A stretch of DNA of 64,000 nucleotides from Tubulanus polymorphus. Lineage: Eukaryota; Animalia; Nemertea. Below are positions 47,161-64,000 of the stretch, piece after piece (position 1 is the first letter of the stretch; each line of letters opens with the position of its first letter). The translations under genes and the position numbers were made by a program. Under the pieces are notes generated by a model. It saw nothing but the letters and a program-made list of their open reading frames with translations. It did not search any database and was not told where the DNA came from. The stretch is from positions 12,164,962 to 12,228,961 of the forward strand of contig NC_134034.1 in NCBI RefSeq assembly GCF_964204645.1. The letters are read 5' to 3'.

Positions 47161-47404
47161 CCACTGTCAAAACAATCTAGTGAACGCGCTTCACGACATT
47201 TAAACTAAAAAGCGAATAGTATCAGGTGAAGTACGATCGAGCCGGCGGCGTTCAGTGGAAACGATCAATTTTCAAAGTAGATTTTATCTTTTGTTTCAAG
47301 AGACGGTTTTGCGACGAACCAAATGGCCCGTAATTACTAAGATTAATGAGGTCATTATCGGCAAGTGAAACCGTTCACGAAATGGCCGGTGATATTACTG
47401 AGAG

Positions 47405-48138
<734 letters not shown>

Positions 48139-48629
48139 AGCAACTACACCATTTTACTGTCATACATCATTTTTGAATTGAAAGAGTTTTTTGGGGGATA
48201 TATTCAAGTTAGCGGAGGAACCATATCCAAATTAGACTCGATTCATAAAAGAAATATCAGAAGACACAATTTATGGTTTTTAGGGCCACACAGTCAGTTC
48301 ATTGGTCTTGCTATAAACCAGTATGAGCTTAGACTGGTCCTGAGTTATTAGATTGGTTATAGAACCAAAATGAGCTTAGAGACATGCGTTAAGTTGTTAA
48401 AATATATACAACCGAATGAGCTTAGACTGGTCTTAAACTGATAGATTGGCTAAAGAACGATATCTAGCTTAGACTGGTTCTAATTTAAACATCGACAGTG
48501 AAACAGGCCTGGAACATAAGTACAAATCATGACACAATCTTAGCCACTACTGCCCCAGTTCTACTGTGCCCGTGTTGACATTTCGTTTGATAACTTAACC
48601 TTGGATCTATTTGTAACTGTGGGTCAAAT

Positions 48630-48771: not shown

Positions 48772-48898
48772 ATGATGGGTATGCACAGGCAGTTGTACGC
48801 GATGTGGCTGATGTTCTTGACGGCCAGTTTTATAACAATTATCTGGATCGCTGTCAATATTCACTTGTACGGTTGGAACTGCGATAATATATGCGCAG
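48772..48898 (+). CDS. GH3/GHDC-like cassette 1, exon A (start codon + hydrophobic N-terminal segment)
   Basis: ATG 48772, MMGMHRQLYAMWLMFLTASFITIIWIAVNIHLYGWNCDNICA-G; ends CAG|GTAAG (phase 1); homologous exon recurs 7 times and joins exon B in frame. Confidence 0.85.
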
Positions 48899-48919: not shown

Positions 48920-49400
48920 CATGGGAGCCCTTCACCCGACTGACAGGGTTCGTGAGGAGCCCTTCACCCGACTGACAGGGTTCGTGAGGAGCCCTTCACC
49001 CGACTGACAGGATTCATGGGAGCCCTGCACCTGACTGACAGGATTCATGAGAGCCCTGCACCTGACTGACAGGGTTCGTGAGGAGCCCTTCACCCGACTG
49101 ACAGGGTTCGTGAGGAGCCCTTCACCTGACTGACAGGATTCATGGGAGCCCTGCACCTGACTGACAGGATTCATGGGAGCCCTGCACCTGACTGGTAGGG
49201 TTCATGGGAGCCCGTCAGCCGACAAGCAAGGCTCAATGGGAACCCTTAACCCGACTGGCACGGCTCATGGGGAGCCCTTCATCCGACGGGTAGGGTTCAT
49301 GGGGAGCCCTTCGCCCAACTGGAAGGGTTCATGGGATGCCCTTCACCTGACTGACAGGGTTCATGGATAGCCTTTCATCCGACTAGCAGAGTTCATGGCG
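48920..49400. repeat. 31-32-bp minisatellite inside cassette 1 intron
   Basis: GAGCCCTTCACCCGACTGACAGGGTTCGTGAG units, degenerating toward the 3' end; absent from paralogous introns. Confidence 0.9.
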
Positions 49401-49455: not shown

Positions 49456-50663
49456 GTTGTGTCTCTTTAGTGTTAGTCGTTATAACCGGTATCATCAGTG
49501 ATATTCGCAGCCGAGATCCCAGTGATTCTCACTCCTGGTCCAGTCTCTATCACCAATACTACGAAGTTGTAAGAACACTAACCACCGGCAGATGGCGCTA
49601 CGCTCAGTTTATACGTCACTCGCTGGACGTCGCCAAGCAGCAAGAAGCCTTCCTAGTCAATCTACTGAAGGAAGCAAGTCACACAGAATACGGCAGGAAA
49701 TTCGGATTCGCCGAAATTAACGACGTAAAGAGATTCCGACAGCAGGTGCCACTGTCTAAATACGACAGTTACCGTGAACTGGTGAATAGGATGCTAGAAA
49801 CAGACGCCGGGGACCTGGTCAGTCCGGGTAAAGCCATCAAATACGGTATGACGTCGGGAACCACTGGTCCGAATAAACACATACCTTACAATTATAAAGC
49901 TTGGAATACGCTCGTAAACGACTACCTGTATTTAATCAGATACACTGAATACAAGCACGGTATGACTGCACGAGCAGGACTTCGTAAAATCCTCGAGCTT
50001 CTAATCCTGCATAAACCGAATCTAAACCGTTTTGGTAAACCAGTCGCCGGTATACTGGTGCTAGTGGGCGAGCAGGCTTATTCGGTAAAACCGGACTGTA
50101 TGCGAGGACGGAAACTGAGTGAATCGTTACAGATGTACATTCAGGCGCGGATTGCTTTACAAGAACCAAAACTACAATTCATACAAGGCTCATTCCCGAC
50201 TATTATGCGCAGTTTCGTTTCCACGATCGAATCTCGCTGGCAGGAAATCTGTGACGACATCGAACGCGGTACATTGACCGACAAACTCGACCTTGACATC
50301 GACCTGCGCCGTCAGATCGTCTGCCAGCTGAAGCCGGATAAAGCTCGCGCTGATGAACTGAGAATGTTGTTCGGCGAAGGTTTCGATAAGTTGCTCAGTC
50401 GCGTGTGGCCGGAGTTGCAGATGGTTGCACAGGTGACGACTGGAGCGTTCACTCATGAGTCAGCTGTCATCAGAGCCAAATATCTGAACGATTCTGTAAT
50501 GATGAAGTCTATAATGTATGGAGCTACTGAAGGCTTATATGGTATCACTATGCCTGGTGTTCCTGATGGTCATTATGTTCCGATGTTACCGCTACAGTTT
50601 CTAGAATTTATACCTCGTAACGAATGTGAACTCGACAAACCGACCACAAGACTAGCTCATCAG
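49456..50663 (+). CDS. GHDC: GH3/GHDC-like cassette 1, exon B (N-terminal adenylation/acyl-binding domain)
   Basis: Acceptor TTTTGCAG|GT; open frame with GH3 hallmarks TEYGRKF, FRQQVPLSKYD, P-loop TSGTTGPNKHIP, ICDDIERGTL, WPEL, YGATEG, FLEFIP; ends RLAHQ CAG|GTTTAT (phase 0); 1208 nt. Confidence 0.9.
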
Positions 50664-51416: not shown

Positions 51417-52624
51417 GTTGTGTGTGCTCAGTGTTAGTCGTTATAACCGGTATTATCAGTGATATTCGCAGCCGAGATCCCAGTGATTCTCACTCCTGGT
51501 CCAGTCTCTATCACCAATACTACGACGTCGTGAAAACACTGACCACTGGTAGGCGGCGCTACGCTCAATTCATACGTCACTCGTTGGACGTCGCCAAGCA
51601 ACAAGAAGCCGTTCTTGTTGATCTGATGAGGGAAGCAAGTCACACAGAATACGGCAGAAAATTCAGATTCGCCGAGATTAACGACGTAAAGAGATTCCGA
51701 CAGCAGGTGCCACTGTCTAAATACGACAGTTACCGTGAACTGGTGAATAGGATGATAGAAACAGACGCCGGGGACCTGGTCAGTCCGGGTAAAGCTATCA
51801 AATACGGTATGACGTCGGGAACCACTGGTCCAAACAAACACATACCATTCAACTATAAAGCTTTGAATATGATTGTAAGTGACTTGATCTATTTACGCAG
51901 ATACACCGAGTACAAACATAGTTTGACCGCGAGAGCGGGGCTTCGTAAAATCCTTGAGCTTCGTATCCCGCATAGGCCGAATCTAAACCGTTTCGGCAAA
52001 CCTGTCGCCGGGATAATGGCGCTAGTTGGCGAACAGGCTTATTCGGTAAAACTAGACTGTATGGGAGGGTGTAAACTGAGTGAATCGGTACAGATGTACA
52101 TTCAGGCGCGGATCGCTTTACAAGAATCAAAACTACAATTCATACAAGGCTCATTCCCGACTATTATGCGCAGTTTCCTTACTACGATCGAATCTCGCTG
52201 GCAGGAAATCTGTGACGACATCGAACGCGGTACGTTGACCGATAAACTCGACCTTGACATTGACCTGCGCCGGCAGATCGTCTGCCAACTGAAGCCGGAT
52301 AAAGCTCGTGCGGATGAACTGAGAATGATATTCGGTGAAGGTTTTGATAAGTTGCTCAGTCGAATGTGGCCGGAGTTGCAGATGGTTGCACAGGTGACGA
52401 CTGGAGCGTTCACTCACGAATCGGCTGTCATCAGAGCCAAATATCTGCACGATTCTGTAATGATGAAGTCTACAATGCACGGAGCTACTGAAGGTGTATA
52501 TGGTATCACTATGCCTGGTGTTCCTGATGGTCATTATGTTCCGATGTTACATCTACAGTTTCTAGAATTCATACCTCGTAACGAATGTGAACTCAGCAAA
52601 CCGACCACCAGACTAGCACATCAG
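51417..52624 (+). CDS. GHDC: GH3/GHDC-like cassette 2, exon B
   Basis: TTTTGCAG acceptor; 1208 nt open frame; TSGTTGPNK, HGATEG; donor CAG|GTTTAT. Confidence 0.9.
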
Positions 52625-53502: not shown

Positions 53503-54710
53503 GTTGCGCATGTTCAGTGTTCGTCGTTATAACCGGTATTATCAATGATATTCGCAGTCGAGATCCCAGTGATTCTCACTCCTGGTCCAGTCTCTACCGT
53601 CAATACTACGACGTCGTCAAAACTCTGACCACCGGTAGATGGCGCTACGTTCAATTCATACGTCACTCGTTGGACGTCGCCAAGCAACAAGAAGCCGTTC
53701 TTGTTGATCTGATGAAGGAAGCAAGTCACACAGAATACGGCAGGAAATTCAGATTCGCCGAAATTGATGACGTAAAGAAATTCCGACAGCAGGTGCCACT
53801 GTCTAAATACGACAGTTACCGTGAACTGGTGGATAGAATGATAGAAACAGACGCCGGGGACCTGGTCAGTCCGGGTAAAGCTATCAAATACGGTATGACG
53901 TCGGGAACCACTGGTCCAAATAAACACATACCTTACAATTATAAAGCGTGGAATTCTCTCGTGAACGATATGATCTATTTTGCTAGATACACCGAGTACA
54001 AGCACGGTTTGACTGCAAGAGCGGGGCTTCGTAAAACCCTCGGGTTTCTAATGCCACATAAACCGAATCTAAACCGTTTTGGTAAACCAGTCGCTGGTAT
54101 AATGGCGCTAGTTGGTGAGGAGGGTTATTCGGTAAAACCTGACTGTATGCGGGGGCATCATCTGAGTGAATCGGTACAGATGTACATTCAGGCGCGGATT
54201 GCTTTACAAGAAACAAAACTACAATTCATACAAGGCTCATTCCCGACCATAATGCGCAGTTTCGTTTCCACGATCGAATCTCGCTGGCAGGAAATCTGTG
54301 ACGACATCGAACGCGGTACATTGACCGATAACCTCGACCTTGACCTTGACCTGCGCCGGCAGATCGTCTGCCAACTGAAGCCGGATAAAGCTCGCGCTGA
54401 TGAACTGAGAATGTTGTTCGGTGAAGGTTTTGATAAGTTGCTCAGTCGCGTGTGGCCGGACTTGCAGATGGTTGCACAGGTGACAACTGGGGCATTCGCA
54501 CACGAATCGGCTGTCATCAGAGCCAAATATCTGAATGATTCTGTAATGATGAAGGCTGTGGGGTATGGAGGTACTGAAGGTGTATATGGTATCACTATGC
54601 CGGGTGTTCCTGATGGTCATTATGTTCCGATGTTACATCGACAGTTTCTAGAATTTATACCTCGTAACGAATGTGAACTCGACACACCGACCACCAGACT
54701 AGCCCATCAG
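53503..54710 (+). CDS. GHDC: GH3/GHDC-like cassette 3, exon B
   Basis: TTTTGCAG acceptor; 1208 nt open; TSGTTGPNK, YGGTEG; donor CAG|GTTAAA. Confidence 0.9.
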
Positions 54711-55418: not shown

Positions 55419-56626
55419 GTTGCGCATGTTCAGTATTAGTCGTTATAACCGGTATTATCAGTGATATTCGCAGCCGAGATCCCAGTGATTCTCACTCCTG
55501 GTCCAGTCTCTATCACCAATACTACGACGTCGTCAAAACCCTGACCACTGGTAGGTGGCGCTACGCTAAATTCATACGTCACTCGCTAGATGTCGCCAAG
55601 CAACAAGAAGCCTTTCTAGTCGATCTGATGAGGGAAGCAAGTCACACGGAATACGGCAAGACATTTCGATTCACCGAAATTGACGATCTAAAAAGATTCC
55701 GACAGCAGGTGCCACTGTCTAAATACGACAGTTACCGTGAACTGGTGGATAGGATGATAGAAACAGACGCCGGGGACCTGGTCAGTCCGGGTAAAGCCGT
55801 CAAATACGGTATGACGTCGGGAACCACTGGACTGAATAAACACATACCGTACAATAATAAAGCGTGGACAATGATTTATAACTATTTTCATTATTTCTGC
55901 AGATACGTCGAATACAATCACGGTGTAACTTCAAGGGTGGGATTGGGCAAATTATTGGAGCTTCGCATCTCACATAAACTAAAAGTTAACCGTTTCGGCA
56001 AACCGATCGCTGGGGTATTAGTTTTACTTGGTGAGCAGGCTTATTCGGTAAAACCGGACTGTATGCGAGGGCACGAATTGAGTGAATCGGTACAGATGTA
56101 CATTCAGGCGCGGATTGCTTTACAAGAATCAAAACTACAATCCATACAAGGCTCATTCCCGACTATAATGCGCAGTTTCGTTTCCACGATCGAATCTCGC
56201 TGGCAGGAAATCTGTGACGACATCGAACGCGGTACATTGACCGACAAACTCGACCTTGACCTTGACCTGCGCCGTCAGATCGTCTGCCAGCTGAAGCCGG
56301 ATAAAGCTCGCGCTGATGAACTGAGAATGTTGTTCGGTGAAGGTTTTGATAAGTTGCTCAGTCGCGTGTGGCCGGAGTTGCAGATGGTTGCACAGGTGAC
56401 GACTGGAGCGTTCACTCACGAGTCAGCTGTCATCAGAGCCAAATATCTGAACGATTCTGTAATGATGAAGTTTAACTTGTATGGAGGTACTGAGGGTTTA
56501 TATGGTATCACTATGCCTGGTGTTCCTGATGGTCATTATGTTCCGATGTTACCGCTACAGTTTCTAGAATTTATACCTCGTAACGAATGTGAACTCGACA
56601 CACCGACCACCAGATTAGCACATCAG
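55419..56626 (+). CDS. GHDC: GH3/GHDC-like cassette 4, exon B
   Basis: TTTTGCAG acceptor; 1208 nt, in frame with ORF 55628; TSGTTGLNK, YGGTEG; donor CAG|GTTGTT. Confidence 0.9.
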
Positions 56627-57164: not shown

Positions 57165-58372
57165 GTTGTGTGTGTTTAGTGTTAGTCGTCATAACCGGTA
57201 TTATCAGTGATATTCGCAGCCGAGATCCCAGTGATTCTCACTCCTGGTCCAGTCTCTATCACCAATACTACGACGTCGTGAAAACACTGACCACTGGTAG
57301 GTGGCGCTACGCTCAATTCACACGTCACTCGTTGGACGTCGCCAAGCAACAAGAAGCCGTTCTTGTTGATCTGATGAGGGAAGCAAGTCACACAGAATAC
57401 GGCAGGAAATTCAGATTCGCCGAAATTAATGACGTAAAGAAATTCCGACAGCAGGTGCCACTGTCTAAATACGACAGTTACCGTGAACTGGTGGATAGGA
57501 TGATAGAAACAGACGCCGGGGACCTGGTCAGTCCGGGTAAAGCCATCAAATACGGTATGACGTCGGGAACCACTGGTCCAAATAAACATATACCATTCAA
57601 CTATAAAGCGTGGAATTCACTCATGAACGATTACCTGTATTTAGTCAGATACACTGAATACAAACACGGTATGACTGCAAGAGCAGGACTTTGTAAAATC
57701 CTCGAGCTTCTAATCCTGCATAAACCAAATTCAAACCGTTTTGGTAAACCAGTCGCTGGTATAATGGTGCTAGTGGGCGAGCAGTCTTATTCGGTAAAAC
57801 CGGACTGTATGCGAGGACGGAAACTGAGTGAATCGGTACAGATGTACATTCAGGCGCGGATTGCTCTACAAGAACCAAAACTACAATTCATACAAGGTCT
57901 TTTTCCGACTATTATGCGTAGTTTCCTTACTACGATCGAATCTCGCTGGCAGGAAATCTGTGACGACATCGAACGCGGTACATTGCCCGATAACCTCGAC
58001 CTTGACCTCAACCTGCGCCAGCAGATCGTCTACCAGCTGAAGCCGGATAAAGCTCGCGCTGATGAACTGAGAATGTTGTTCGGTGAAGGTTTTAATAAGT
58101 TGCTCAGTCGCGTGTGGCCGGAGTTGCAGATGGTTTTACAAGTGACGACTGGAGCGTTCACTTCTGAATCGGCTGTCATCAGAGCCAAATATCTGCACGA
58201 TTCTGTAATGATGAAGGCTATCGAGTATTGGGGTACTGAGGGTTTATATGGTATCACAATGCCTGGTGTTCCTGATGGTCATTATGTTCCGATGTTACAT
58301 CTACAATTTCTAGAATTTATACCTCGTAACGAATGTGAACTCGACAAACCGACCACCAGACTAGCTCATCAG
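57165..58372 (+). CDS. GHDC: GH3/GHDC-like cassette 5, exon B
   Basis: TTTTGCAG acceptor; 1208 nt open; TSGTTGPNK, YWGTEG; donor CAG|GTTTTT. Confidence 0.9.
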
Positions 58373-59160
58373 GTTTTTAAAATCTTTTTACATCATTCTA
58401 TTGGTATATTTCGTCAATTTAGTTTTTTTTTATTTTCATTCCTCATTTCCCAAGTGTTTAGGTGTTTTTTTCTCAGATAACGATTAAAATCAATATAGCT
58501 GCAAGGCAGCGATAACATGTTTTCTACACCTCTTACATTTGAACTCAGGGGAATGACCATAGAATATACAAGGTTTATAAGGTAAATTCATTGCCGGGAA
58601 TTCGAAGCTGATATTATGATAAGAGAAAATAATGGAGAATGTGACTGAAATGGATGTTTGATTCGGATATTCCCGGAGTATTCCATTTATTTTGGCAAAT
58701 GAATAATGCTCACAGCACAAACAAACGAAGAGTATGTGATATCCTACAGCAATTATATACCTACCTACAAGAATCCTTGAAATTGAAATATTTGATAATT
58801 TCAAGTTTTACCTCATTTGTTGATGGTGTTCTGTTCCGTAAATAACGAGTTTAAAATCGGATGCATACCACATACATGGAATCCACTAGTTCAGAGTGTC
58901 TGTTATATTTTAGTCAGAATTTATTATCGCGTCAAGATGCTGCTACTAGTCGAATTTGATAGGACATAAATTTTTAGAACGCTCGCGAAAGGGGAATGGA
59001 AAATAATATCACGAAAATAACAATAGTTTCCTGCGAAGTTATCAGTGATGATAATTTAATTTTCTTTTCTGCGCTCCACTGCGTTTCAGAGCAGTTTACA
59101 TACTTAAGTAAAAAAGTGCTCGATGCTTTATAACGCAGTCCTGTCAGACAACTGGATATA

Positions 59161-59480
59161 CAGTCGACCTCGCAATAATCGTCAATTTAGGGACCGGCTC
59201 AAAAGTAACGATTCATCTAATTGACGGATTAAGTGCATTGTGACTTTCTGACTCATATCACCAGTCTCTGTTTTTCAATATCTACTATGAATGAATGAGA
59301 ACATGCGATGAGGTCGTCGTGATTCATGTATGTATCGATTTTCTGTGTGTATTTGCTACAAAGCTATAGGGTCTGTGTCAAGGCAATATGGCCTAATAAA
59401 CGCGGCACCTGCTGATTAATATTCATTTGTGCAGCGACGGTTTAACTGATATCATTACGTATGAGCAGTACTTATAAACG
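59161..59480. mobile_element. Insertion with Tc1/mariner-pogo-like left terminus in spacer 5-6
   Basis: TA followed by CAGTCGACCTCGCAATAATCG…GGGACC; segment is absent from the otherwise homologous spacer 6-7; right TIR not clearly intact and right boundary approximate. Confidence 0.4.
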
Positions 59481-59613
59481 GACTTGATGTAGCAGTGTCT
59501 ATGCAATAAAATGACAGCTCAGTCGCTATAGATATCTAGCGAAACCGGCCGAACTAGTTTTCTGGCTAAATGAGAATATTTCATTCTGTGACAGCGCGGT
59601 GTAAGGCGTTTTT

Positions 59614-59743
59614 ATGACGTTGGGTATGCACAGGCAGTTATACGCGTTATGGCTGATGTTTTTGACGGCCAGTTTTGTCACAATGATCTGGATCGCTGTC
59701 AATATTCACCTGTACGGTTTGAACTGCGATATTGTATGCGCAG
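59614..59743 (+). CDS. GH3/GHDC-like cassette 6, exon A
   Basis: ATG 59614, MTLGMHRQLYALWLMFLTASFVTMIWIAVNIHLYGLNCDIVCA-G; CAG|GTAAG. Confidence 0.83.
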
Positions 59744-60040
59744 GTAAGAAGCGACTGCTTTCAAATATTAATTATATCGATTGTAAATTCTAGACCAAAA
59801 CACGTGAAGACTTATAGTAATTAGTAGGTTAACTCGATTTTATAAGTAATTTTAGCTTCAAGTGCACAGTGGCTCAATCAGGTTTAATGAAACCCGGCGA
59901 AACATAACTCGTCACTAGTAACGAAAGCTTGCATTTCTCGTGTTACCAGTCTTCGCGGTTATTGATTTAACACCTCTTCAAATTCTAGACGACCTCGATC
60001 AACGCCGATATTTATGACCTTTGATGTTTTTGTTTCGCAG

Positions 60041-61245
60041 GTTGCGCATGTTCAGTATTAGTCGTTATAACTGGTATTATCAGTGATATTCGCAGCCGAG
60101 ATCCCAGTGATTCTCACTCCTGGTCCAGTCTCTATCACCAATACTACGACGTAGTGAAAACAATGACCACCGGAAGATGGCGCTACGCTGAGTTCATACG
60201 TCACTCGCTAGACGTCGCCAAGCAACAAGAAGCCTTTCTAGTCAATCTGATGAGGGAAGCAAGTCACACAGAATACGGCAGAAAATTCAGATTCGCCGAG
60301 ATAAACAACATAAAGAAATTCCGACAGCAGGTGCCACTGTCTAAATACGACAGTTACCGCGAACTGGTAGATAGGATGCTAGAAACAGACGCCGGGGACC
60401 TGGTCAGTCCGGGTAAAGCCGTCAAATACGGTATGACGTCGGGAACTACTGGCAAGAGTAAACACATACCGTACTGTTGTACAGCTTGGAATTCACTCAT
60501 GAACGATTTCTTCCCTTTCCTGAGATACACTGAATACAAACACGGTATGACTGCGAGAGCGGGGCTTCGTAAAATCCTCGAGATTCTTATTCTACAAAAA
60601 CCGAATCTAAACCGTTTTGGTAAACCAGTTGCCGGTATAATGGCGCTAGTAGGCGAGCAGTCTTATTCGTTAAAACCGGACTGTATGCGAGTGCACAAAC
60701 TGAGTGAATCGGTACAGATGTACATTCAGGCGCGGATTGCTTTACAAGAACCAAAACTACAATTCATACAAGGCTCATTCCCGACTATTATGCGCAGTTT
60801 CCTTTCCACGATCGAATCTCGCTGGCAGGAAATCTGTGACGACATCGAACGCGGTACATTGACCGATAAACTCGACCTTGACCTTGACCTGCGCCGTCAG
60901 ATCGTCTGCCAACTGAAGCCGGATAAAGCTCGTGCTGATGAACTGAGAATGTTGTTCGGGGAAGGTTTTGATAAGTTGCTCAGTCGAATGTGGCCGGAGT
61001 TGCAGATGGTTGCACAGGTGACGACTGGAGCGTTCACTCACGAGTCAGCTGTCATCAGAGCCAAATATCTGCACGATTCTGTTATGATGCAGTCTGAGTA
61101 CGGAGCTACTGAGGGCAAATATGGTATCACTATGCCTGGTGTTCCTGATGGTCATCATATTCCGATGTTATCGCTACAGTTTCTAGAATTCATACCTCGT
61201 AATGAATGTGAACTCGACAAACCGACCACCAGACTAGCTCATCAG
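60041..61245 (+). CDS. GHDC: GH3/GHDC-like cassette 6, exon B
   Basis: TTTCGCAG acceptor; 1205 nt (one-codon in-frame deletion before YGATEG); TSGTTGKSK; donor CAG|GTTTAT. Confidence 0.9.
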
Positions 61246-62195
61246 GTTTATGAATATATTTTAACCATTTTACAAGTACTTCTTATCAATTTCGTTTTAT
61301 ATAATTTTTCCATTCCTCATTTTCTAAGCTTTTACCGGTTTGTTGTTTTTTTTTCATAGATAATGATTATGATTAATGCACCTGCTAAGCAACGATAAGC
61401 AGTTTTCCGCACCTTTTGCATATGAAGTTAAGGGATTAAAAAATTGCAAAAGATATTTATTGCCGGGGAATAAAACCTGATATTATAACTGTAGAAAATC
61501 GGTAATGTTACTGAAATGGATATCTGATTTGGGTATTCTCGGTTCCGTCCACTTACTTTGGCACGTGACTAATGTCACAAACGATCAATATCGTGCAGTA
61601 ATTATATCCGAATCCACAACAGTACTTGAAACTGAATTTTCAAGTAATTGTACGTTTTACCGTATTTCTGGGTGGTGTTTTGTTTCGTAAAATAAACATT
61701 TTAAAATAGGATGGACGGTACACATATTGAAACTACTGGTCCAGAAAGTGTGTTTTATTTTTGTCAAAATTTATTATTACGTTTAGAAGCTGTAACTAGT
61801 CGTGTTGACGAGGCACACGTTTTATAGAACGCTTGCTGCTTGACAAGGGAAATGAAAATGACAATCACGAAAATAAACATATTATAGAATTTTCTGCGAA
61901 GTGATAATTACTGATGATGATTTCATTTCATTTTCTCTGCGCTCGACTACGTTTCGTGGCGGTTTACATGTTCAAACGTCAATAAGTCAAAATCAAAAAT
62001 AGCTTTATTTGTTTGATAACGTAGTCGGGTCAGAAACGACTCAGTATTGTTAAATCTATACCATAAAATGAGAGGTCACAGTCTTTAAAGATATCTAACG
62101 AAACCGCCCGAACTGGTTTTTAAGCCAAGCGTAGGTATTTCATTTTGTGCATCGCAGTTTTTAAGGATTTTTAACGAGGGTTTACTGGTGTTTTT

Positions 62196-62322
62196 ATGAT
62201 GGGTATGCGTAGGCAGTTGTACGCGTTATGGATGATGTCTTTAGCCGCCAATTTTTTAACAATTACCCTGACCGTTGTCAACATTCACCTGTACGGTTTG
62301 AACTGCAATACTTCATGCGCAG
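62196..62322 (+). CDS. GH3/GHDC-like cassette 7, exon A
   Basis: ATG 62196, MMGMRRQLYALWMMSLAANFLTITLTVVNIHLYGLNCNTSCA-G; CAG|GTAAG. Confidence 0.83.
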
Positions 62323-62625
62323 GTAAGAAGCGACTGCTTTCAAATAATATCGATTGTACATTCTAGAGTAGTACGCAAGAATAGTTTTTTAGTGGTTAAC
62401 TTGATTTCATTGAAACTATCGCTAGTACATTGTAGTAGATAGTGGCTTCATCGGGTAGATGAGACCTGTTGCAGCTACAATGCACTTAAAGTAACTTGTG
62501 TTCTAAAAACAATCAAGGTTACCTGCCGTTCTAACCAGTATTCGCGTTTATTGATTTAAGACGACTACAAATTCTAGACGAACACAATCAACCCTCATAT
62601 GACGTTTGATGTCGTTGTTTTGCAG

Positions 62626-63833
62626 GTTGTGTGTCTTTAGTGTTAATCGTTATAACCGGTATTATCAGTGATATTCGCAGACGAGATCCCAGTGATTCTC
62701 ACTCCTGGTCCAGTCTCTATCGTCAATACCGATGCGTAGTAATAACGCTTATCACCGGAAGATGGCGCTACGCTCAATTCACACGTCACTCGCTGGACGT
62801 CGCCAAGCAACAAGAAGCCGTTCTTGTTGATCTGATGAGGGAAGCAAGTCACACAGAATACGGCAGGAAATTCAGATTCGCCAAAATTGACGACGTAAAG
62901 AAATTCCGACAGCAGGTGCCACTGTCTAAATACGACAGTTACCGTGAACTGGTGGATAGGATGATAGAAACAGACGCCGGGGACCTGGTCAGTCCGGGTA
63001 AAGCCGTCAAATACGGTATGACGTCGGGAACTACAGGCAGGAGTAAACACATACCGTACAATAATAAAGCGTGGAAAATGCTGTTTAGTTATTATCATTA
63101 TTTCTTCAGGTACATTGAGTGCAAACACGATGTCACATCAAGAGTGGGTTTGGGAAAAATATTGGAGCTACGTATGTTACATCGACCGATTCTAAACCGC
63201 TTCGGTAGGGCAGTAGCTGGGGCATTAGTTTTACTAGGTGAACAGGCTTATTCGGTAAAACCGGACTGTATGCGAGGGCAAAAACTGAGTGAATCGGTAC
63301 AGATGTACATTCAGGCGCGGATTGCTTTACAAGAACCAAAACTACAATTCATACAAGGCTCATTCCCGACTATAATGCGCAGTTTCGTTTCCACGATCGA
63401 ATCTCGCTGGCAGGAAATCTGTGACGACATCGAACGCGGTACATTGACCGATAACCTCGACCTTGACATCGACCTGCGCCGTCAGATCGTCTGCCAACTG
63501 AAACCGGATAAAGCTCGCGCGGATGAACTGAGAATGTTGTTCGGTGAAGGTTTCGATAAGTTGCTCAGTCGTGTGTGGCCGGAGTTGCAGATGGTTGCAC
63601 AGGTGACGACTGGAGCGTTCACTCACGAGTCAGCTGTCATCAGAGCCAAATATCTGCACGATTCTGTAATGATGAAGTCTATAATGCACGGAGCTACTGA
63701 AGGTTTATATGGTATCACTATGCCTGGTGTTCCTGATGGTCATTATGTTCCGATGTTACATCTACAGTTTCTAGAATTTATACCTCGTAATGAATGTGAA
63801 CTCGACAAACCGACCACCAGACTAGCTCATCAG
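62626..63833 (+). CDS. GHDC: GH3/GHDC-like cassette 7, exon B
   Basis: TTTTGCAG acceptor; 1208 nt open; TSGTTGRSK, HGATEG; donor CAG|GTTTCA. Confidence 0.9.
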
Positions 63834-64000
63834 GTTTCAAAAATATTTTTACATCACTCTATTGGTATATTACGTTAATTTATTTTTTTTTATTTTCATT
63901 CCTCATTTCCCAAGTCTTTATGTGTTTTTTTTCTCAGATAATGATTAAAATCAATATAGCTGCAAGGCAGCGATAACATGTTTTCTACGCCTCTTACATT

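Follow-up and report, generated by a model that had tools for sequence, protein, structure and literature searches.

In the nemertean Tubulanus polymorphus, a gene for a GH3 protein (acyl-acid amido synthetase) is, as read from its sequence, one gene with ten alternative 5' cassettes and a common 3' end. The uneven variation among these cassettes has as its main cause the gene conversion of most of their large exon (exon B), from which one block of codons, V1, has escaped, and it is mainly not due to a raised dN/dS ratio. Taken as a whole, the explanation that we regard as rather likely is that a common scaffold kept by conversion, together with diverse pocket blocks, provides isoforms for different acids. 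In this explanation, short-tract conversion among the cassettes would keep most of exon B nearly identical in nucleotides, and V1, the 90 codons that follow the P-loop, would have escaped homogenization as three old lineages under purifying selection. Moreover, V2, a block of 13 codons at the strand–turn–strand of motif II, would, at a few of its positions, have gained an excess of amino-acid change. Both blocks would include positions that belong to the acyl pocket or determine specificity in plant GH3 enzymes and, thus, the ten cassettes would give nine pocket configurations on the common scaffold. The likely outcome would be isoforms that differ in the carboxylic acids they adenylate and conjugate, following the logic of the vertebrate UGT1A locus.

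Architecture of the Cassette Array

The DNA analysed here (C10:12164962-12228961 of T. polymorphus) is a stretch of 64,000 nucleotides, referred to as the window. The cassettes lie in tandem on one contig, seven of them inside the window, between 48.7 kb and its end, and three just past it. Each cassette is composed of a short exon A (124–169 nt, in which an ATG and a hydrophobic helix precede a GTAAG donor), an intron of 79–557 nt, and a 1.2-kb exon B that is open over 401–402 codons, from an acceptor TTTTGCAG followed by GT in phase 1 to an end ...RLA(H/Y)Q followed by GT. The seven copies in the window are spaced 1746–2876 nt from start to start and are 78–97% identical over aligned 300-nt blocks. 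In all ten cassettes, an intact exon A with its own ATG precedes exon B and the splice sites are conserved.

Exon B encodes the N-terminal domain of GH3, since all seven window copies match Pfam GH3 (PF03321) with E values of 1e-46 to 1e-52 and scores of 157–177 bits versus a curated cut-off of 23.6. The C-terminal domain (GH3_C) is matched just once in this region of the contig, 3' of cassette 10, and the constant exons exist as a single set, located beyond the window end and 3' of the array, with its first exon at about 12237579 on C10. The full protein P0004 has PF23571 and PF23572, the middle and C-terminal domains of GH3, on record. Regarding the three nucleotide-binding motifs of the family, the P-loop TSGTTGxxK is invariant, the turn of the Y-G/A-S-S-E type, here x-x-x-T-E, contains the invariant catalytic residues Thr357 and Glu358 (equivalent to plant Ser341 and Glu342), and the YRxGD motif is found as YRYRTGD in the constant part.

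The usage of the cassettes is deduced from the NCBI gene models together with the intact splice sites. The annotated isoforms X1–X5 of LOC141911654 contain cassettes 3, 4, 2, 10, and 4, respectively, all of them joined in these models to the common constant exons. Cassettes 1, 5, and 8 are annotated by NCBI as separate truncated genes (P0002, P0001, and P0003, respectively) and not as isoforms of LOC141911654; these three models either stop a few residues past the donor of exon B or continue across it. The full-length protein employed for folding and PDB searches was the database protein P0004 rather than a new joining of cassette exons. An assembly artefact or a pseudogene array was ruled out, every frame and splice site being intact and ω being below 1.

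All features of the cassettes are on the + strand, and codon 1 is the first full codon of exon B. In cassette 1, exon A (48772..48898) has the ATG, a predicted membrane helix, and the GTAAG donor, and matches the N-terminus of P0002, while exon B (49456..50663; 402 codons) has the acceptor TTTTGCAG followed by GT in phase 1 and ends in ...RLAHQ followed by GT. V1 of this cassette (49848..50117, codons 131–220) covers the end of the P-loop, an α5-like helix (49887..49952, codons 144–165, helix 188–208 of the P0004 model), a strand, and the turn equivalent to "VLTSYY", whereas V2 (50502..50540, codons 349–361) is the strand–turn–strand at nucleotide motif II. Exon B of cassette 2 extends over 51417..52624 (V1 51809-52078, V2 52463-52501) and that of cassette 3 over 53503..54710 (V1 53895-54164, V2 54549-54587). 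Cassette 4, the one annotated in isoform X2 (P0004), has its exon B at 55419..56626 (V1 55811-56080, V2 56465-56503), and cassette 5 at 57165..58372 (V1 57557-57826, V2 58211-58249). They are followed by cassette 6 (exon B 60041..61245, V1 60433-60702, V2 61087-61122), with 401 codons and a V2 shortened by a one-codon deletion, and by cassette 7 (exon B 62626..63833, V1 63018-63287, V2 63672-63710).

Several further features accompany the array. Cassettes 6–10 (58373-64000, and on to ~72165 in joined coordinates) form a higher-order repeat in which the start-to-start spacing alternates between ~2585 and ~2870 nt, and the spacers are 95–97% identical among cassettes 6, 8, and 10 and 98% identical between cassettes 7 and 9; therefore, a two-cassette unit of ~5.45 kb was recently duplicated. 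Most of the intron of cassette 1, and of this cassette only, is a 32-nt minisatellite (48920-49398, ~15 copies, 84% matches). Directly upstream of the array there is an (AG)n microsatellite of ~730 nt (47346-48351), and the 25 kb further upstream (24–47 kb) are rich in minisatellites (periods of 31–117 nt) and purine-rich tracts with strong GC/AT skew. At the other end, a ~114-nt tandem repeat (C10 ~12239352-12240605) lies just 3' of the GH3 stop codon and last constant exon, and is open in all three + frames over 850–1250 nt. Other GH3 genes of this worm have a conventional layout, namely three tandem copies at C3:8621315-8629729, each with its own C-terminal domain, and a single-cassette paralogue at C5:24276025-24278485 (P0005) that shares 58% identity with the array.

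Two hydrophobic helices, which correspond to residues 2–32 and 36–60 of the model and have low pLDDT, are specified by exon A plus the first 15 codons of exon B (48772-48898 and 49456-49510 in cassette 1, and the equivalent positions in the others). Because of these helices, the enzyme is probably membrane-anchored, as predicted from the model, unlike the plant GH3 proteins compared here.

Distribution of Variation along Exon B

A preliminary description of this DNA had drawn attention to variable segments within otherwise near-identical copies, and had placed them at 49848-50545, that is, from codon 131 (P-loop) to approximately codon 363 (just past motif II) of exon B in cassette 1. The peptides quoted in it are present in the exon Bs of all seven window copies, and the four stretches that it considered near-identical hold 2–4 polymorphic nt per 33–51 nt, with 97.8–99.0% mean pairwise identity over the ten copies. 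Its view that hypervariability is confined to these segments stands with respect to clustering and is overstated with respect to confinement. V1 and V2 together represent 25.6% of the codons and contain 60 of the 130 variable columns (OR 4.6, p=2e-10), a concentration that is stronger for columns with at least three residues (30 of 36; OR 20, p=3e-14). The remaining 70 variable columns are outside both blocks, as are 76 of the 178 minimal amino-acid changes, and codons 31–50 constitute a minor third variable block.

The stretches flanking V1 (codons 111–130 and 221–240; in cassette 1, 49788-49847 and 50118-50177) are the parts of the exon with the highest nucleotide identity (pS ~0.04). They could act as conversion anchors, or could be constrained at the nucleotide level, e.g., for exon definition in an exon of 1.2 kb.

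Gene Conversion and the Age of V1

The contrast between V1 and the remainder of exon B is largely a contrast in synonymous divergence. The mean pairwise Nei–Gojobori values are dS 0.83, dN 0.21, and ω 0.26 for V1; dS 0.38, dN 0.25, and ω 0.68 for V2; and dS 0.19, dN 0.04, and ω 0.22 for the rest of the exon. Thus, synonymous divergence is about four to five times higher in V1 than in the rest. Tree lengths, in substitutions per codon, are likewise 2.9–4.8 for V1, 3.5 for V2, and 0.95 for the rest. A mutation hotspot in V1 can be discarded because recently duplicated cassettes have a V1 dS equal to that of the rest: no excess of change in V1 was detected between cassettes 7 and 9 (V1 dS 0.05 versus 0.07 in the rest) or among cassettes 6, 8, and 10 (0.08–0.11 versus 0.05–0.13).

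Outside V1, the dS between any pair of cassettes is only 0.09–0.24, independently of how their V1 blocks are related, and in the extreme case of cassettes 1 and 9, a V1 dS of 1.26 is accompanied by 0.09 in the rest. The V1 tree groups cassettes 4, 7, and 9 with 100% support, and the trees of the other segments disagree. In AU tests, the V1 tree was rejected on the data from the rest of the exon (p=1.8e-5) and the tree of the rest was rejected on the V1 data (p=5e-5), while the N-terminal and middle segments each reject the tree of the other. Moreover, cassettes with divergent V1 blocks have in common identical tracts of 90–200 nt, as revealed by a GENECONV-style permutation (seven pairs with p<=0.001); all these tracts are outside V1 and some of them start at codon 219. 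GC3 is also lower in V1 (0.41–0.49) than in the rest (0.49–0.52) in all ten copies, a contrast that is absent from the single-copy paralogue on contig C5. Tree conflict, common identical tracts, the GC3 contrast, and the heterogeneity of dS therefore show that regional gene conversion homogenizes the scaffold and that V1 retains old lineages.

These results also bear on the possibility of a passive mosaic of old duplicates, in which a diverged V1 can no longer be converted, since conversion needs identity, and diversity is not selected. Conversion tracts end at the edges of V1, identity along the exon peaks in its flanks (pS 0.04), and the ω of V1 is ordinary, all of which would be expected from such a process. 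However, it gives no account of why the block that diverged first bears pocket elements, nor of the non-synonymous excess in V2, and as a full account of the locus it seems to us unlikely. It is compatible with the preferred explanation of a converted scaffold with diverse pocket blocks, and the sole difference between them is the role of selection. We infer selection preserving the diversity of V1, whose escape could be a passive effect of divergence.

Tests of Selection on V1 and V2

Selection was evaluated with a codon-model likelihood program of our own (models M0, M1a, and M2a), in which the M0 ω was consistent with the counting method. The maximum likelihood (ML) estimates of ω under M0 are 0.36 for the α5-like helix, 0.21 for the rest of V1, 0.55 for V2, 0.26 for the V2 flanks, and 0.30 for the rest, with 0.26 for V1 as a whole; the helix-alone value is significantly below 1. 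Tree-free minimal N:S counts are 36:12 for the helix, 15:5 for V2, and 76:94 for the rest (helix and V2 against the rest, p=3e-4 and 0.016, respectively), but the ω near 1 that the helix count implies was discarded as a saturation artefact, since ML, which corrects for multiple hits, yielded 0.36. The elevated dN/dS anticipated for V1 was not supported overall (0.26 versus 0.22 with NG86 and 0.21–0.36 versus 0.30 with ML), and dS is raised as much as dN.

Site models presume a single tree, and recombination breaks this assumption and can yield false positives, a caveat that applies to each of the following values. For V1 on its own tree, the comparison of M2a with M1a was not significant (LRT 2.2, p=0.33), with site 160 alone flagged (posterior 0.89), and no site was flagged in the N-terminal part (LRT 0, p=1.0). 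On the other hand, codons 221–402 gave LRT values of 16–18 on three topologies (p=1e-4 to 3e-4), with a selected class of ω ~3 comprising 8–9% of the sites and including 351, 352, 353, and 360, and also 237, 333, and 378. When the indel-bearing cassettes 6 and 8 were left out, the LRT for these codons was 9.3 (p=0.0096) and sites 351, 352, 353, and 360, and also 237 and 333, were flagged, and the 73 codons 330–402 on their own tree gave 6.8 (p=0.033), with sites 352, 353, and 360, and also 333. Therefore, dN/dS shows a modest rise in the helix and a clear one at no more than a few V2 sites, and the evidence for ω above 1 is limited to V2 sites 351–353 and 360 (p=1e-4 to 0.03). The V2 signal is robust to the choice of tree and to leaving out cassettes 6 and 8, but recombination violates the model. 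The diversifying selection proposed in the preliminary description may apply to these V2 sites, at ω ~3 in the site models, and was not supported for V1 (p=0.33).

Relaxed constraint only, with V1 and V2 as tolerant segments that drift, functionless variation, and redundant isoforms, would be in line with an average ω that never exceeds 1, with the non-significant M2a result for V1, and with the low-confidence loop that the model of P0004 predicts at residues 209–218, a part of V1. Nevertheless, purifying selection acts on V1 taken as a whole (ω 0.21–0.36), and relaxed constraint cannot produce the matching excess at synonymous sites in this block. In addition, the variation coincides with sites aligned to the pocket, the substitutions mostly keep a hydrophobic or aromatic character, and the ten frames are intact. 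Relaxed constraint is accordingly given a low probability.

Relationship of the Variable Blocks to the Acyl-Acid Pocket

A profile of 24 GH3 relatives aligns end-to-end with the plant GH3 structures 4B2G, 4EPL, and 4EPM (E 1e-85 to 1e-97); this profile was required for V1, which was not aligned in a PDB search with a single sequence. Between the P-loop Lys and the end of the next helix, the profile alignment of the plant and worm proteins contains no gaps. WNNKYL of GH3.12 corresponds to YNNKAW of the worm. In the acyl-acid pocket of AtGH3.6, the inhibitor D4 contacts Tyr134, Leu175, Tyr178, Tyr179, Phe184, Thr193, Tyr195, Val231, Ile312, Met337, Ala339, Ser340, and Ser341 (PMC9894192), and seven residues have been proposed to determine acyl specificity in OsGH3.8, namely Arg130, Leu137, Val174, Leu175, Met337, Ala339, and Tyr344 (PMC10747189). 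The index printed for the 4B2G chain is taken as the numbering of the paper minus two, an offset deduced from residue-type matches at 12 of the 13 D4 contacts.

In this way, 16 plant pocket or specificity residues were mapped, by sequence-profile alignment at ~20% identity and not by ligand distances, and 12 of them vary among the cassettes; the mapping of Thr193 and Tyr195 is weak, given an alignment gap near codons 205–209. The mean entropy of the 16 sites is 0.81 versus 0.28 for all sites (~3-fold; permutation p=6e-5), an enrichment that agrees with the earlier proposal that the variable segments hold elements lining the acyl site. The α5-like helix (codons 144–165) contains the sites aligned to plant Arg130, Tyr134, and Leu137, and V2 sites 353, 355, 356, 357, and 360 align to Met337, Ala339, Ser340, Ser341, and Tyr344, respectively. 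Among the cassettes, site 353 (Met337) is occupied by M, G, L, E, or V; site 360 (Tyr344) by L, V, or K; site 156 (Tyr134) by Y, L, M, or F; site 159 (Leu137) by L or F; and site 199 (Val174) by I, V, or A. Nine pocket configurations are found among the ten cassettes, cassettes 7 and 9 being identical there. A comparison inside V1 shows no excess of change at pocket-aligned sites relative to their neighbours (11:9 versus 76:61, p=1.0), and the helix sites with most variation (153, 157, and 160) are one residue off the mapped positions.

The AF2 model of P0004 (mean pLDDT 82.5) contains helix 188–208, the strand–turn–strand of V2, and the expected strands and short helix, and includes the low-confidence loop at residues 209–218. 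In Foldseek searches, the model matches AtGH3.15 with TM 0.84–0.85 and rmsd 2.9–3.3 Å, and the top 30 matches are all plant GH3 structures. The structure prediction suggested earlier thus returned the plant GH3 fold (TM 0.85 to AtGH3.15), and the predicted model has the two-domain fold of this family.

An additional possibility is that the variable residues tune not the acyl acid but something else, be it the acceptor (an amine or amino acid), the interaction with a protein partner, or the association with a membrane. The acceptor site adjoins the acyl site in GH3 enzymes, the most variable helix positions (153, 157, and 160) are beside and not at the mapped acyl contacts, and the N-terminus is predicted to be membrane-anchored. 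Nevertheless, sites 353 and 360 (Met337 and Tyr344), together with 156 (Tyr134), correspond to residues that contact the acyl group or an inhibitor directly in the plant enzymes, and this kind of tuning is considered improbable. Returning to variation in the acyl pocket itself, the pocket alignment suggests that the cassette versions probably act on different acids.

Comparison with Known Systems

The organization of the locus resembles that of vertebrate UGT1A, which also encodes a conjugating enzyme with tandem alternative 5' exons for the substrate-binding domain and a common 3' set. UGT1A comprises multiple variable first exons and common exons 2–5, and its hypervariable regions form the acceptor pocket and contain positively selected sites; the variable–constant organization of Ugt1, Gcnt2, and Ugt2a has been termed vertebrate-specific, and gene conversion in UGT1 is minor (PMC1885805). 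By contrast, the host of the present locus is a nemertean, the enzyme is predicted to be an ATP-dependent GH3 amido synthetase rather than a glycosyltransferase, the cassettes consist of two exons each, and gene conversion dominates.

The evolutionary pattern is the same as in clustered protocadherins, whose variable exons are in part homogenized to near identity by repeated conversion, while the part responsible for specificity (EC2–EC3) escapes and holds the diversity (PMC1852091). The same contrast of synonymous sites and GC3 was used as a test in that system (PMC1852091), although the GC3 contrast of the worm is small (~0.44 versus 0.50). Moreover, protocadherins are adhesion receptors, whereas the worm locus encodes an enzyme in which the escaping parts are blocks of 90 and 13 codons within one catalytic domain.

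Plant GH3 proteins (AtGH3.5/3.6, OsGH3.8, VvGH3-1, JAR1, PBS3, and AtGH3.15) are similar to the worm protein in fold, domains, and the three nucleotide motifs. In them, the acyl site is lined by the helix that follows the P-loop, by the VLTSYY segment, and by the strand–turn–strand of motif II, and it is at these residues that paralogues differ. However, the plant paralogues are separate complete genes, identity is ~20%, and the worm protein carries a hydrophobic anchor at its N-terminus. The nearest relatives outside nemerteans are mostly bacterial GH3-like proteins, and a search of the protein collection for close orthologues from other species found none, the next match after the Tubulanus paralogue being 29% identical. 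One bacterial GH3-like protein, the N-acyl-ornithine synthase OlsH, carries out the ATP-dependent joining of fatty acids to an amino acid (PMC12493201); it is ~23–29% identical to the worm protein and is encoded by a single gene without a cassette array. By analogy with OlsH, N-acyl amino acids would be a reasonable class of products.

V2 of cassette 1 recurs beside the unrelated V1 of cassettes 7 and 9. As a more speculative proposal, which we consider doubtful, V1 and V2 would be exchangeable pocket modules between ultra-conserved anchors, and conversion would both keep the scaffold and reshuffle the modules. The locus would then be a combinatorial pocket generator and the first variable–constant enzyme locus outside vertebrates.

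Biological Significance

For animal GH3-domain proteins (vertebrate GHDC), the literature matches listed contain only one or two mentions each, in gene lists of broad expression or genome surveys, with no substrate or role. The present locus offers a natural panel of chimeras for finding substrates. Furthermore, it is a clear case in which "hypervariability" comes from uneven gene conversion and not from raised dN/dS. Vertebrate detoxification enzymes follow a "many front ends, one back end" design, which would have had a separate origin in an invertebrate, within a different enzyme family. Finally, nine predicted pockets on a homogenized scaffold would argue that substrate range matters for this worm enzyme.
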